Shown here: piece by piece, positions 51,977 through 55,712 of the stretch
How positions within the stretch are numbered: the first letter of the stretch is position 1
Layout: the number at the start of each line of letters is the position of its first letter
Assembly (NCBI GenBank): GCA_052426225.1
Contig: JBNJNM010000013.1
Span: 372,001-436,000, forward strand
Source: Zancudomyces culisetae HAW-14-8
Taxonomy: Eukaryota; Fungi; Kickxellomycota
Reading direction: 5' to 3'
Length of the DNA: 64,000 nt
Position numbers and translations under genes: made by a program
The notes under the pieces: generated by a model
What the model saw: the letters and a program-made list of their open reading frames with translations, nothing else
Told to the model about the DNA's origin: nothing
The model's database searches: none

Positions 51977-54900
51977 ATGGATTATTTAGAATTAGATGAA
52001 ACCACGCGAAAGGCGCTGAGAACATTTGAATATATACAAAACACGGAATTTGTGGGAGTTCCGCGGGGAGATATTCTGGCAGAGGATTCTATCCCATGTA
52101 ATTGTTCATATACAGAAGGTAATTTGCACTTTATGTAAATAGGAAAATAAATATTGTGAGACTTAAAAAATGGATTTAAATGTAATTAGCTGATTTAAAA
52201 ATGGAACATATTTTTAACAATAGGAGTAGATGAGGAGTGGAAGGCCTGCGGAAAACATTCAGAGTGTATAAATAGATGTGTGCTCGTGGAATGCCATCCT
52301 TTAACGTGTCCCACAGGTAGAGCGTGTAAAAACAGAAGGTACGGTGTTATTCGATTCGCTAAATAGATCACACTGTTGTTATGTTTAATCTACAACAAAC
52401 ATGAATAACACGTAAAATAGGTTTCAGAAAAAGGAATACGCTCGGATTAAGGTTATCGAGGCCGGCGATAAAGGGTTTGGGGTGGAGGCCGCAGAGGATA
52501 TACAAGAGTAAGTGAGATACGACCAGATTATGTTTGTTCTCGCGTCAATTATACAAAAAGTTGTGAAGAATATAAATAATTATAAACAATTATGATAAAT
52601 AAAATTTAGAGGGTCGTTTGTGATAGAATACACAGGAGAAATGGTGGAACGAAAGAAGTTTGTAAAGCGAACATATGAATATGGTCAGCAGAAAATTAAG
52701 CATCATTATTTTATGGAAGTTGATCCATACCAGATCATTGATGCGACACGGAAGGGTAATGTGGCACGATTTATAAACCACAGCTGCAAACCCAACTGTG
52801 AGCTGCAGCGGTGGATGGTGAATGGACAGTTTCGGATGGGGATCTTTACGACACGAAAGATATTCAGAGGCGAAGAGCTAACGTTTGATTATAAGTTTGA
52901 AAGATTAGAGGGTACAACACCGCAAATATGTTTTTGTGGCGAGGAGGTATGCAAAGGAGTCATAGGGGTAGAGCGAAAGCAAAAAGAAAACAAAATCTTT
53001 GAGTATATTGGGGGTGATGGTGAACATGAAGTGATTAGCGATAGTGAAAGCGATGAAGGGCAAACAGTCAAAAAGGCTGATGTATATAATAAGAGTAAAG
53101 TAATTGATAGTGGAGAGGATAGCGAGTCCGATGCATATGTGGACAGCGAAGGTAGTGGTGACGAACAGTATCCAACACATGGCCATAGGACAAAAGGTCT
53201 GCAAACTCACGAGGATATGCTGAAGTTAGTGCAGCTTATGATGCAGGCACAAATAAAAAAATCGCACATCCGGCTGATAACTGGGAAGCTTTTGGAAACG
53301 GCAAAGAACAAGAGGTTATTATCGTTTTTTTTGTCACATCATGGTCTACGAATACTCCGGTTTTGGTTGTTGGAAAATCTAAATGACGAAACAATAGTTA
53401 TTCCGATTCTACAATGTATAAAAGCCCTGCCAATAAAAACACGAAATACGGTGGAAGATAATAAGATTGAGGATGCAATGGTTGCATGTAAAAAGAGTCG
53501 TGACGAGTTTATATCGGAATTGGCCAAGAATATTTTAGAATCGTGGAAAAAACTGAAGCTAGTCTACAAAATTCCCAAACGCACCAATACAACGACCAAT
53601 GACCGCGATGGCGATACTGGCAGTACCAACGCTAATTCTGAAAGATCCAAATCTGCTACTCCATCAACGCCTTTTACAGATCAACAGACCAGTGCTAATA
53701 TCAACGCTAATACCAATAGCTCATATTCCGATTCCTATTTAAATACAACCAATGGAAGAGATGCTACGTTGAACAATGGCACACAAAACGGATGGGATAA
53801 TGGTGGAAATGCGGATACAAACTCAAGCAATGCGGCTAGTGGATGGGGTGATGAACCGAATGTAAATTCTACATCTAGTGGGTGGGGCGCTGAACCTACC
53901 ACAAAAACACCTGCTGAAAATGTATCAAGTGGATGGGGAGATGGCATAAGCACAAGAACCAGCCATAAATCAAGCGGATGGGGAGCCGATCCGACTACAA
54001 AAGCACCAGTTGAAAGTGTACCAAGCGGATGGGGAGATGACATAAGCACAAGAACCAGCCATAAATCAAGCGGATGGGGAGCTGAATCAACCACAAAAGC
54101 ACCAGCTGAAAGTGTATCAAGCGGATGGGGAAGCGGACCAACTATAAACGCACCGACGGAGAATACATCCAGTAGATGGGGAGATGGCATAAGCACAAGA
54201 ACCAGCCATAAATCAAGCAGATGGGGAGCTGAACCAACTACAAACGCACCGGCGGAGAATGCATCAAGTGGATGGGGAACTGAACCAACTACAAAAGCAC
54301 CAGCTGAAAGTGTATCAAGCGGATGGGGAAGCGGACCAACTACAAACGCACCGGCGGAGAATGCATCCAGTGGATGGGGAGATGGCATAGGTACAAAAAC
54401 CAGCCATGAACCAACTGGTTGGGGAGACAGCGGAAACGATGCTGCAAATTCTACATCTGGCGGATGGGGAGCCGATGTAAATATAGATACTAAATCAAAT
54501 GGGTGGGGTGTTGACTCAAGTTTAGATAATCCCACCAATTCTGCGTCACAGGGATGGGGAGCCGACTCCTACTCATCCTCCACCAATATCAACTCCAGTT
54601 CTACCGCCACTAAAAACACCCACTCTTCTAGGCCATACAATTCCCATTCATACAACAACGATGACAACAATTATAATAATAGCAATAATAACAAAAAGAG
54701 ATATTCAAACAATAATGGGTATTCTTCATCCTTTTCAAAAAGACAAAGTCCATCTGATAGATCCTTCTATTCGAACACAGACAAGCGCCCGCGATTTGGA
54801 GATGGCGATGGCTATAACCGTAATAGTGAAAATGGCAAGTACGATAAAAATAGCACCATAAATTCTGACAAGAATAACAGCTACAATGATAATCCATACT

Positions 54901-55712
54901 CATCTTGGGGCACTGCAGATCCTGTTCGATCGCCCAATGATGCATGGGGTGCGTTTTCACCCTCTTCGTCTAGTAGAAACGATCCCAACAATACAGATAC
55001 TACCCGTTCCCGCCCGCACGCTTTTCATACCCAGAATCACACTGATCTTTTGCCTGGTTGGAGTTCTGCCGTTTCTGAAGATGGGAAAACATATTATTAC
55101 AACCTCTTTACCAACCAGACTCAGTGGGATCCCCCACTGAAATCTACCACCTCTGCATCTCCTGCTCCCACTCCAAACAATAGCAATAACAGTGGTACCG
55201 CAAAGTCAAAGCCAAAGTCAAAATCTGTGAAATTTTCTGCTGGTATTCCCTCTCCCACCTCCAATTCGACTCAAAAGAAGGTTTCTCGTAGTCACGACCA
55301 TGCCAGCATTGCTAAAAAGAAAGGTGGTACTACTGCTGTTTTATCTGAGGCTGACCAGAAAAACATAGAAAAGCAGTATACGAGCGCTCTCGGGCCTCTT
55401 ATTGTCAAACTGCTCAGCCGGCAACAGCACGTCCAGCAGTTTAATTTAGATAAACAGGTATTCAAACATGAGGCCAGAAAGTTAACACATATCTTGATTG
55501 AAAAAGAGAAAAAAAGCCATTCTAGCAAACCTGGCACCAATCCCGACCCAAATCTCTTTTCTAAGCTTACCGACCACAAGCGGAAAAAAATTGAACAGTT
55601 TGTTGTTTCTTATGTTGAAAAGCTAAAATCTCACCACCAGTCTCAATCTCAAAAGCAATCTCCGGAGCAATCTCAGGTAAAACAACTTGAGAACCCACAA
55701 ACACAAGAGTAA
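51977..55712 (+). CDS. SET2: Histone H3K36 methyltransferase Set2 (AWS-SET-postSET, helical domain, GW/WG-repeat insert, WW, SRI); exons 51977-52118, 52224-52338, 52421-52507, 52610-55712
   Basis: AWS (CNC...ACG..SECINR...VEC....CP.G..CKNRRFQK), SET (KGFG, IEYTGE, IDATRKGNVARFINHSCKPNC, GEELTFDY), postSET CFCGEEVCKG, WW (LPGWSSAVSEDGKTYYYN..TNQTQWDPP) and SRI (FKHEARKLTHILIEKEKK...KKIEQFV). Confidence 0.95.
53790..54563 (+). repeat. GW/WG-repeat coding minisatellite in SET2 (51-nt and 45-nt units)
   Basis: 17 GW/WG motifs. Unit A is SSGWG(A/S/T)(E/D/G)PTT(K/N)APAE(S/N)(V/A), 17 aa; unit B is SSGWGDGISTRTSHK, 15 aa. Units are near-identical at DNA level. Confidence 0.95.

Follow-up and report, generated by a model that had tools for sequence, protein, structure and literature searches.

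The Set2 gene of the fungus Zancudomyces culisetae HAW-14-8 contains, in its last exon, a long in-frame array of regularly spaced Trp residues. We analysed the gene in a 64,000-nucleotide stretch of the genome (contig JBNJNM010000013.1, positions 372,001 to 436,000 of the forward strand; hereafter the window, whose own numbering is used for positions) and compared its array with other Set2 sequences and with the Trp-containing repeats of other proteins. As judged from sequence, the array is part of the coding sequence of Set2, and it is confirmed as a conserved, order-wide feature of Set2 in the Harpellales rather than a one-off. We tentatively suggest, with a confidence somewhat short of even, that the array is a selected multivalent Trp docking platform, most likely an elongation scaffold on Set2 resembling the C-terminal repeat region (CTR) of Spt5.

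The Trp array of Set2

The Set2 gene (51977-55712, + strand) has four exons, and its product is 1148 aa long. The Trp array (53784..54590, + strand) comprises 17 units of 13-17 aa with the core S-S-G-W-G. The 17 Trp residues were located by script at residues 392-646 of the open reading frame (ORF) in the last exon, corresponding to residues 510-764 of the full-length protein (nt 53793-54557), and are separated by 13, 15 or 17 aa. The array motifs were 15 GWG, 2 RWG, and 1 GWD, and the exact sequence SSGWG was present in 9 units. In the translation, the array is followed by an Asn/Ser/Tyr-rich low-complexity segment (54591..54896, + strand) and then, before the WW domain, by two distal WG motifs detected by the motif script (54897..54950, + strand), namely YSSWG (SSWG at nt 54906) and NDAWG (DAWG at nt 54945). 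An earlier, sequence-only reading of the window had reported the coordinates of the array, the number of 17 motifs, its position in the last exon, and the two additional WG motifs; script and exon placement reproduced all of these.

ORF residues 391-680 include 57 Ser, 41 Gly, 35 Thr, 26 Ala, 25 Asn, 18 Pro, 17 Trp, 16 Asp, and 13 Glu, with three Tyr, one Leu, and no Phe, Met or Cys. The residues F, L, I, M, V, Y, and C together make up 5.9% of the array, which, with 19 Gly-Trp/Trp-Gly (GW/WG) motifs in total, has the hydrophobe-poor, Gly/Ser/Asp/Asn-rich character of an Argonaute hook, for which at least three Trp motifs are expected. Tandem Repeats Finder detected DNA periods of 51, 96, 147, and 198 nt over 53883-54426, with at most 89% matches. 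Two types of unit, SSGWGAEPTTKAPAESV (17 aa) and SSGWGDGISTRTSHK (15 aa), alternate in the array. Older, diverged units on the outside of the array (QNGWDNG, ASGWGDE, SGGWGAD, SNGWGVD, and SQGWGAD) still contain GW.

The array is coding and not intronic, because it shares its reading phase with the domains on either side, its GC content is 0.49 versus 0.21-0.32 in the three Set2 introns, its two alternative frames contain 9 and 22 stops, and the SSGWG cores differ in synonymous codons (TCA/TCC/TCT, AGC/AGT, and GGA/GGG/GGT). The 3.1-kb open frame that contains it (52620-55712, + strand) is stop-free over 1030 aa. The claim that the array is in frame was thus correct, and nothing in the sequence suggests that it is spliced out of the mRNA. 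The central copies are recent duplicates, as they might be if the array were not protein but an intron that escaped recognition, an artefact of assembly or a recent expansion without function; however, this explanation is extremely improbable in view of the features above and of the equivalent in-frame arrays in Furculomyces, Smittium culicis, and S. mucronatum described below. Even spacing by itself is trivial for a tandem repeat, but the retention of Trp across the diverged units and across species exceeds chance.

Conservation of the array in Harpellales

Among the 120 listed Set2 homologs, more than 5 GW/WG motifs per 300 aa were found in Harpellales only. In S. culicis Set2 (P0044 and P0047), the linker between the helical bundle and the WW domain contains 23 Trp residues with a period of 11 aa (for example, TSTGWNSKPVE). 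The same linker position in S. mucronatum Set2 (P0118) contains 26 Trp residues, also with period 11 (KSKSWNSQ). Furculomyces boomerangus Set2 has 27 Trp residues at the equivalent place, and its gene model is split: P0052 ends after the SET domain, and the rest is found in the next open frame (L023:8422-10965), which encodes, in order, approximately 15 SSGWG[NS] units, each some 17 aa long, a stretch rich in RG/RD, approximately 9 [KT]GWGS[QH]P units, a WW domain, and an SRI-like tail. In the annotation of this sequence (MBFT01000740.1; L023:5001-10965), a mitochondrial-carrier gene is fused to the AWS-SET part of Set2 (P0052), and the part with the Trp array, WW, and SRI is given as a separate 866-aa protein without Pfam matches.

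In the case of S. simulii (L022:5296-6660; MBFR01000151.1), a Trp residue in the linker is immediately followed by a stretch of N, and the annotated gene model splices round this stretch. The apparent lack of the array in this species is unreliable because of this assembly gap; thus, we rejected S. simulii as an example of Set2 without an array. Public Harpellales gene models therefore hide the array, by splitting in Furculomyces and by a gap in S. simulii.

The Trp share of the Set2 linker is 3.9-5.1% in the four Harpellales; in Kickxellales and Basidiobolus it is 0.7-2.1%. The two S. culicis linkers share 85.8% identity and have all Trp residues in common (23/23; the chance of this is about 0.02). 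In none of the four lineages (Z. culisetae, Furculomyces, S. culicis, and S. mucronatum) are neighbouring Trp residues closer than 11 aa. The units cannot be aligned between genera; what is kept is the position in Set2, the Trp residues, and the minimum spacing of at least 11 aa; this is selection acting on Trp and not on a fold. The Trp conservation among orthologous arrays on which the sequence-only reading depended was accordingly found in four lineages.

Outside these arrays, an exhaustive HMMER search with the Z. culisetae array against 1.84 billion representative proteins found no relative. The 8 matches with E ≤ 0.001 were all spurious periodic sequences (among them HEAT/NACHT proteins bearing IASGWAD repeats and a LysM protein), and none was Set2, Spt5 or GW182. 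When the array was searched at protein level against the genome of the organism itself (27.1 Mb, 25 contigs), the sole match was the array, and a feature search of the ESM Atlas gave no usable match.

Gene structure and domains of Set2

Exons 1-3 were placed by tblastn with the Set2 sequences of S. simulii (P0001) and Mycoemilia (P0002), with splice sites taken from the sequence; exon 4 alone was used as the search query. All exons and domains are on the + strand. Exon 1 (51977..52118; placed with P0001, GT donor at 52119) contains the start codon and the onset of the AWS region, and exon 2 (52224..52338; AG acceptor at 52222-52223, GT donor at 52339) encodes the Cys-rich AWS region (DEEWKACG...CPTGRACKNRR). 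The AWS cysteines of both exons align with those of P0001 and P0002. Exon 3 (52421..52507; ortholog alignment and splice sites) contains the onset of the SET domain, RFQKKEYARIKVIEAGDKGFGV. The last exon, exon 4 (52610..55712), encodes the remainder of SET up to the stop codon, and residue n of its ORF corresponds to residue n+118 of the full-length protein.

Within exon 4, Pfam matches and ortholog alignment place the C-terminal part of SET with NHSC and ELTFDY, followed by the post-SET motif CFCGEEVCKG, at 52626..52895 (PF00856, 1.8e-18; ORF residues 3-92 for SET). A helical bundle resembling Med26/TFIIS-N is at 53406..53555 (PF08711, 2.5e-6; residues 263-312), the WW domain at 55050..55136 (PF00397, 3.4e-11; residues 811-839), and the SRI (Set2-Rpb1 interacting) domain at 55389..55637 (PF08236, 2.1e-9; residues 924-1006). 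NHSCKPNC, ELTFDY, and the post-SET cysteines are all intact in the translation. Its closest relatives come from the Set2 proteins of two orders, Harpellales and Kickxellales (Smittium simulii, 53%; also Mycoemilia and Coemansia), and the organism is accordingly a gut fungus of Harpellales type. By its sequence, the product is a canonical member of the Set2/SETD2 family with AWS-SET-postSET, WW, and SRI, as the sequence-only reading had also held in calling it catalytically intact. It shares the core, the helical region, WW, and the C-terminal SRI with S. cerevisiae Set2, S. pombe Set2, and human SETD2; unlike these, it has about 270 aa of Trp repeats inserted between the helical bundle and WW. 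The bundle sits where yeast Set2 has its autoinhibitory region, which in yeast inhibits the enzyme until Spt6 binds (PMC13535259); we infer from that work that the bundle is equivalent to the yeast autoinhibitory domain (AID).

Relation of the array to Spt5

A single Spt5 gene is present in the genome (L009:2492-5401; 969 aa), on a contig other than that of Set2. Its tail contains ASGWGAP, TSSWNYS, SSSWGGG, NSGWGDP, and DSGW, and the tail core [AS]SGWG[AD]P is the same as the core of the Set2 units, SSGWG[AD]EP. The Spt5 proteins of S. culicis (P0121, 1373 aa) and S. mucronatum (P0122, 1427 aa) have 22-23 Trp motifs C-terminally, spaced by a median of about 14 aa and with the pattern ..A-W-G-S-x-S-S... 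C-terminal Trp counts were 10 in Furculomyces (P0123), 8 in Mycoemilia, and 10 in Coemansia, and S. japonicus Spt5 has the classical TPAWN(S/A)GSK. When Trp-centred profiles of the four Set2 arrays were compared with those of the Spt5 CTRs of the clade, cosine values of 0.54-0.66 were obtained, with a shared core of [S/G]-[G/S/A]-W-[G/N]-[S/A]. The order of Trp array, RG-rich stretch, and further Trp motifs is common to Furculomyces Set2 and Smittium Spt5. In most units of the Z. culisetae array, Ser occupies positions -3 and -2 relative to Trp, like the phospho-acceptor in yeast CTRs.

The Spt5 of Z. culisetae (contig C21 of the assembly G000, + strand) is short at 969 aa, with five tail Trp motifs versus the 22-23 in Smittium. 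The next gene, on the opposite strand, starts about 95 nt past the stop codon; a further Spt5 exon is therefore not likely.

The CTR of S. cerevisiae Spt5 consists of S[T/A]WGG[A/Q] repeats, and that of S. pombe of TPAWNSGSK repeated 18 times (the latter in PMC10659198). The Set2 array is like fungal CTRs in having one Trp per unit with Ser/Thr before it and G/N-S after it, and it resembles the Spt5 units of 12-14 aa found in Smittium and Furculomyces. It is unlike them in lying in Set2, in its units of 11-17 aa in the clade, in having no proline-directed TP site, and in giving no match to PF12815. The sequence-only reading had mentioned mimicry of Spt5 repeats as an alternative; with ASGWGAP and NSGWGDP in the organism's own Spt5 tail, and with the Spt5 repeats of the clade being Trp arrays of the same motif class, this alternative is now at least as likely as the Argonaute hook. 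The simplest reading of these sequences would be that Harpellales Set2 gained a second copy of the Spt5-type Trp platform of the clade, with a common reader for both.

In S. pombe, Thr1 of the Spt5 repeat is phosphorylated by Cdk9; the phosphorylated form binds the Plus3 domain of Rtf1, and the unphosphorylated form binds capping and 3'-end factors (PMC10659198). Mutations of the S. pombe Spt5 C-terminal domain (CTD) strengthen the impact that mutations of the Rpb1 CTD have on H3K36 methylation (PMC4787787). Starting from the observed anatomy of Set2, the Trp conservation, the motif identity with the Spt5 tail, and the Plus3 (Rtf1) gene that is present in the genome, we propose the following ligands, phosphorylation, and effect on activity. 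The SRI domain would keep Set2 on the phosphorylated Rpb1 CTD, where the array, located beside the helical bundle with its putative autoinhibitory role, would present some 19 copies of a Spt5-type Trp motif. A kinase of the Cdk9/Bur1 type would act on the Ser-Ser before each Trp. The phosphorylated array would then be read by Rtf1 Plus3/Paf1 complex, and the unphosphorylated array by capping or 3'-end factors, so that H3K36 methylation would be tied to the phosphorylation cycle of Spt5.

Several observations weigh against this scaffold. The units of 11-17 aa (13-17 aa in the window) are far longer than the canonical CTR units of 6-9 aa. The Spt5 CTD family of Pfam (PF12815) gave no match at E ≤ 10 in the Set2 arrays or in the two Harpellales Spt5 tails tested (Z. 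culisetae and S. culicis). Pairwise co-evolution of each Set2 array with the Spt5 CTR of the same species was considered and found unsupported, as the comparison showed no clear species-specific diagonal; because there is no such species-by-species co-variation, a shared reader is not demonstrated. The known recognition by Plus3 centres on the phospho-residue and not on Trp. In S. pombe, loss of the Thr1 phospho-site of Spt5 alone barely alters H3K36 methylation (PMC4787787). Motif likeness among low-complexity Ser/Gly/Trp sequences is in general weak evidence. The array itself lies inside Set2 and not behind the KOW domains at the end of Spt5, whose gene is on another contig; it can therefore be called CTR-like only, and not a CTR.

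Argonaute genes and other explanations of the array

The sequence-only reading had regarded the array as an Argonaute hook that would couple small RNAs to H3K36 methylation. Two Piwi genes are present in the genome, one on contig C8 (L001) and one on C21 (L002), together with two Dicer-like frames of 2562 codons each with paired RNase III domains. In HsAgo2, the Trp-pocket residues are K660 and L694 (pocket 1), F653 (pocket 2), and R688, C691, and P700 (pocket 3) (PMC9262622; bioRxiv 10.1101/2025.10.18.683247). The C8 Argonaute keeps L650, F653, Y654, K660, C691, L694, E695, Y698, and P700 of HsAgo2, and is changed at R688Y, F587D, and V591T. A vertebrate AGO1 control reproduced the remaining pocket neighbours of HsAgo2 used in the mapping. 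In the C21 Argonaute, the Trp pocket is lost (K660V, L694Y, F653C, and Y654R); L694Y is one half of the HsAgo2 double mutant K660A/L694Y, in which TNRC6 binding is abolished. Pocket 1 is also retained in the C8 orthologs of five Smittium species and in most other fungal Argonautes sampled; the pocket-1 residues are unspecific for this reason.

In the C21 Argonaute (L002:31-2541; G000:C21:2676581-2680483), three residues of the catalytic tetrad were mapped, and all of them (D-E-D, the positions other than H807) are kept. The C8 and C21 Argonautes are 46% identical and, to judge from their residues, may differ in partner binding. The Dicer-like frames (G000:C12:676123-679635, L004; G000:C6:2171280-2176334, L005 and L007) form a pair with identical scores and lengths, as do two Pre-SET genes of 586 codons each (G000:C6:1653797-1657246, L025; G000:C10:1350030-1353479, L026). 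These paired loci on different contigs suggest segmental duplication or uncollapsed haplotypes.

If the array is a hook, pairs of Trp residues at least 10 aa apart would enter the PIWI Trp pockets of the C8 Argonaute, which we regard as possible but doubtful. Set2, held on elongating RNA polymerase II (Pol II) by SRI, might then carry, or be recruited by, Argonautes loaded with small interfering RNA, so that small RNAs would be coupled to H3K36 methylation; this we consider rather unlikely as well. The array has much in common with known hooks (GW182/TNRC6, S. pombe Tas3, and plant NRPE1, SPT5L/KTF1, and SPT6L), which are disordered and hydrophobe-poor, vary in their units, keep Trp (mostly as GW/WG) at spacings of at least 10 aa, and are in host proteins that travel with RNA polymerase. 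Sixteen of the 19 linker Trp residues are flanked at four positions by G/S/T/N/D/E/A/Q/P only, and the array is slightly acidic (D+E 29, K+R 14). The spacing of at least 11 aa in four lineages agrees with TNRC6 sites, in which Trp residues must be at least 10 aa apart (PMC9262622). The turnover of units around constant Trp residues is a described hallmark of Argonaute hooks, for which the Wsearch/Agos criterion is a motif score of at least 6 in at least 3 motifs, and the polymerase-bound elongation factors NRPE1, SPT5L, and SPT6L provide a precedent (PMC10991848). A hook is also favoured by the two Piwi genes and two Dicer-like frames, by the pocket-1 residues kept in the C8 Argonaute and its five Smittium orthologs, and by a genome-wide search with a DNA pattern of three GWG at array-like spacing, in which the Set2 array was the only in-frame coding array found (a match on C11 was left aside).

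A hook is further favoured by a small GW cluster in another protein of this genome, a histone deacetylase (HDAC) of class II type (L031; G000:C21:3307480-3311475, + strand; the open frame begins at nt 853 of the locus). Close to where its HDAC domain starts, some 150 aa are inserted that contain five Trp residues (SSGWGN, GPWGGG, GDWM, DGWGE, and NGWS) in an Arg/Ser/Asp-rich context. This HDAC is the second chromatin enzyme with GW motifs here, and would fit a wider network of Trp motifs on chromatin enzymes. A broader version of the hook, again with less rather than more in its favour as judged by sequence, would place this HDAC and the expanded Spt5 repeat of the clade in the same Trp-pocket network. 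Plant NERD has GW repeats and a PHD finger and binds AGO2 and histone H3. It resembles the present Set2 as a chromatin-reading or -modifying protein bearing a GW platform, but NERD is not a SET-family enzyme and is unrelated in sequence; NERD is named in PMC10991848.

Other evidence argues against a hook. The conservation of pocket 1 is not specific among fungal Argonautes, and in the C8 Argonaute, Tyr replaces R688 of pocket 3, Asp replaces F587, and Thr replaces V591; K660V and L694Y are present in the C21 Argonaute. Of the 26 Trp residues in the S. mucronatum array, only 5 belong to GW/WG, and most are in the Lys-rich KSKSWNSQ and not beside Gly, unlike in Argonaute hooks. The host here is a histone methyltransferase, and the array, compared with hooks by sequence alone, has no sequence homology to them; isolated arrays gave no match to Pfam Ago_hook at E ≤ 10. 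The same motif class occurs in the clade's Spt5, an essential protein, which speaks for a general role in elongation. The RNA-dependent RNA polymerase family (PF05183) gave no match in the whole genome, which is weak evidence, as the control genomes were without the family. The sequence-only reading had also supposed a pathway based on K36 rather than K9; this is not forced, because Pre-SET (Clr4-type) genes exist in the genome and a K9 route is available. The RNA-guided K36 interpretation was thus supported in part: the identity of Set2, the coding array, the Argonaute, and the Trp conservation stood, and the choice of K36 over K9 was not compelled. The presence of Argonaute, the conservation of Trp, and the presence of the pocket leave the hook standing as a minority possibility, and none of them is specific to it. 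A CTR-like scaffold and an Argonaute hook can both be true, with Argonaute as a possible further ligand.

The array might instead work without a dedicated pocket. Evenly spaced aromatic residues could act as stickers that drive weak multivalent self-association or co-condensation with the Pol II CTD and Spt5 CTR tails, which we think unlikely; in an equally unlikely variant, the array would merely adjust the distance of the catalytic/AID half from WW-SRI and the autoinhibition between the two, with no partner that has a Trp pocket. Consistent with such a role, Trp is nearly the sole aromatic or hydrophobic residue, evenly spaced in an S/G/T/N-rich chain that is followed by the Asn/Ser/Tyr-rich segment. 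Repeat number and unit turn over fast: the DNA copies are at most 89% alike, the units are genus-specific, and the 1.84 billion representative proteins contain no relative. The array directly follows the region that autoinhibits Set2 in yeast (PMC13535259), and condensate formation has been raised for Ago-hook-like domains (PMC10991848). However, a pure spacer does not need Trp, and Tyr and Phe, the usual stickers, are nearly absent. Moreover, Trp is kept in every unit, including the old diverged outer ones, and in four lineages, although an AT-rich genome loses TGG easily.

Other observations in the genome

The other matches to the GWG pattern were telomere-like G-rich repeats, a minus-strand match on C6, and a similar match on C11. 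We rejected the minus-strand match on C6, as it is the antisense of a TTGYPTVAP repeat of cell-wall type and not a GW protein. This repeat type is seen in an 879-aa Thr/Pro-rich protein (L010:69-2708; G000:C6:171840-174955, + strand) whose tandem repeats (TTGYPTVAP, GTTIPESTSF, and PGTTVDDVIV) are long and whose tail has Cys-rich motifs; it looks like a secreted or cell-wall protein. Degenerate G-rich repeats (GGGGTA/GGGTTA/GGGGTGGGG) at contig ends (G000:C9:1395570-1396293, G000:C6:2922413-2922488, and G000:C13:1531-2924) are probably irregular telomere repeats. Like the RNA-dependent RNA polymerase family, the chromo-shadow domain (PF01393) gave no match in the whole genome, in a search without a positive control, although Argonaute, Dicer-like, and Pre-SET genes occur there.

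Implications

Set2 is among the best-studied chromatin enzymes, and its known inputs are the Pol II CTD (via SRI), Spt6, and the nucleosome. A literature search across 8.4 million papers found no description of Set2, Argonaute, and GW repeats together, and the matches to Argonaute hook and H3K36 were irrelevant by title and abstract. The enzyme is thus known, and the Trp platform within it is new among the literature searched. A conserved platform of 17-27 Trp motifs would add to Set2 an input channel that is undescribed in that literature. If Argonaute is a ligand, the system would be the first in which RNA guides H3K36 methylation, and the array would be a fungal counterpart of the plant NRPE1, SPT5L, and SPT6L hooks that ends in a mark of transcribed chromatin. 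If the readers are those of the Spt5 CTR, a histone writer would carry a copy of an elongation factor's 'CTD code', and Harpellales Set2 would offer a natural experiment on the coupling of Spt5 phosphorylation and H3K36 methylation.

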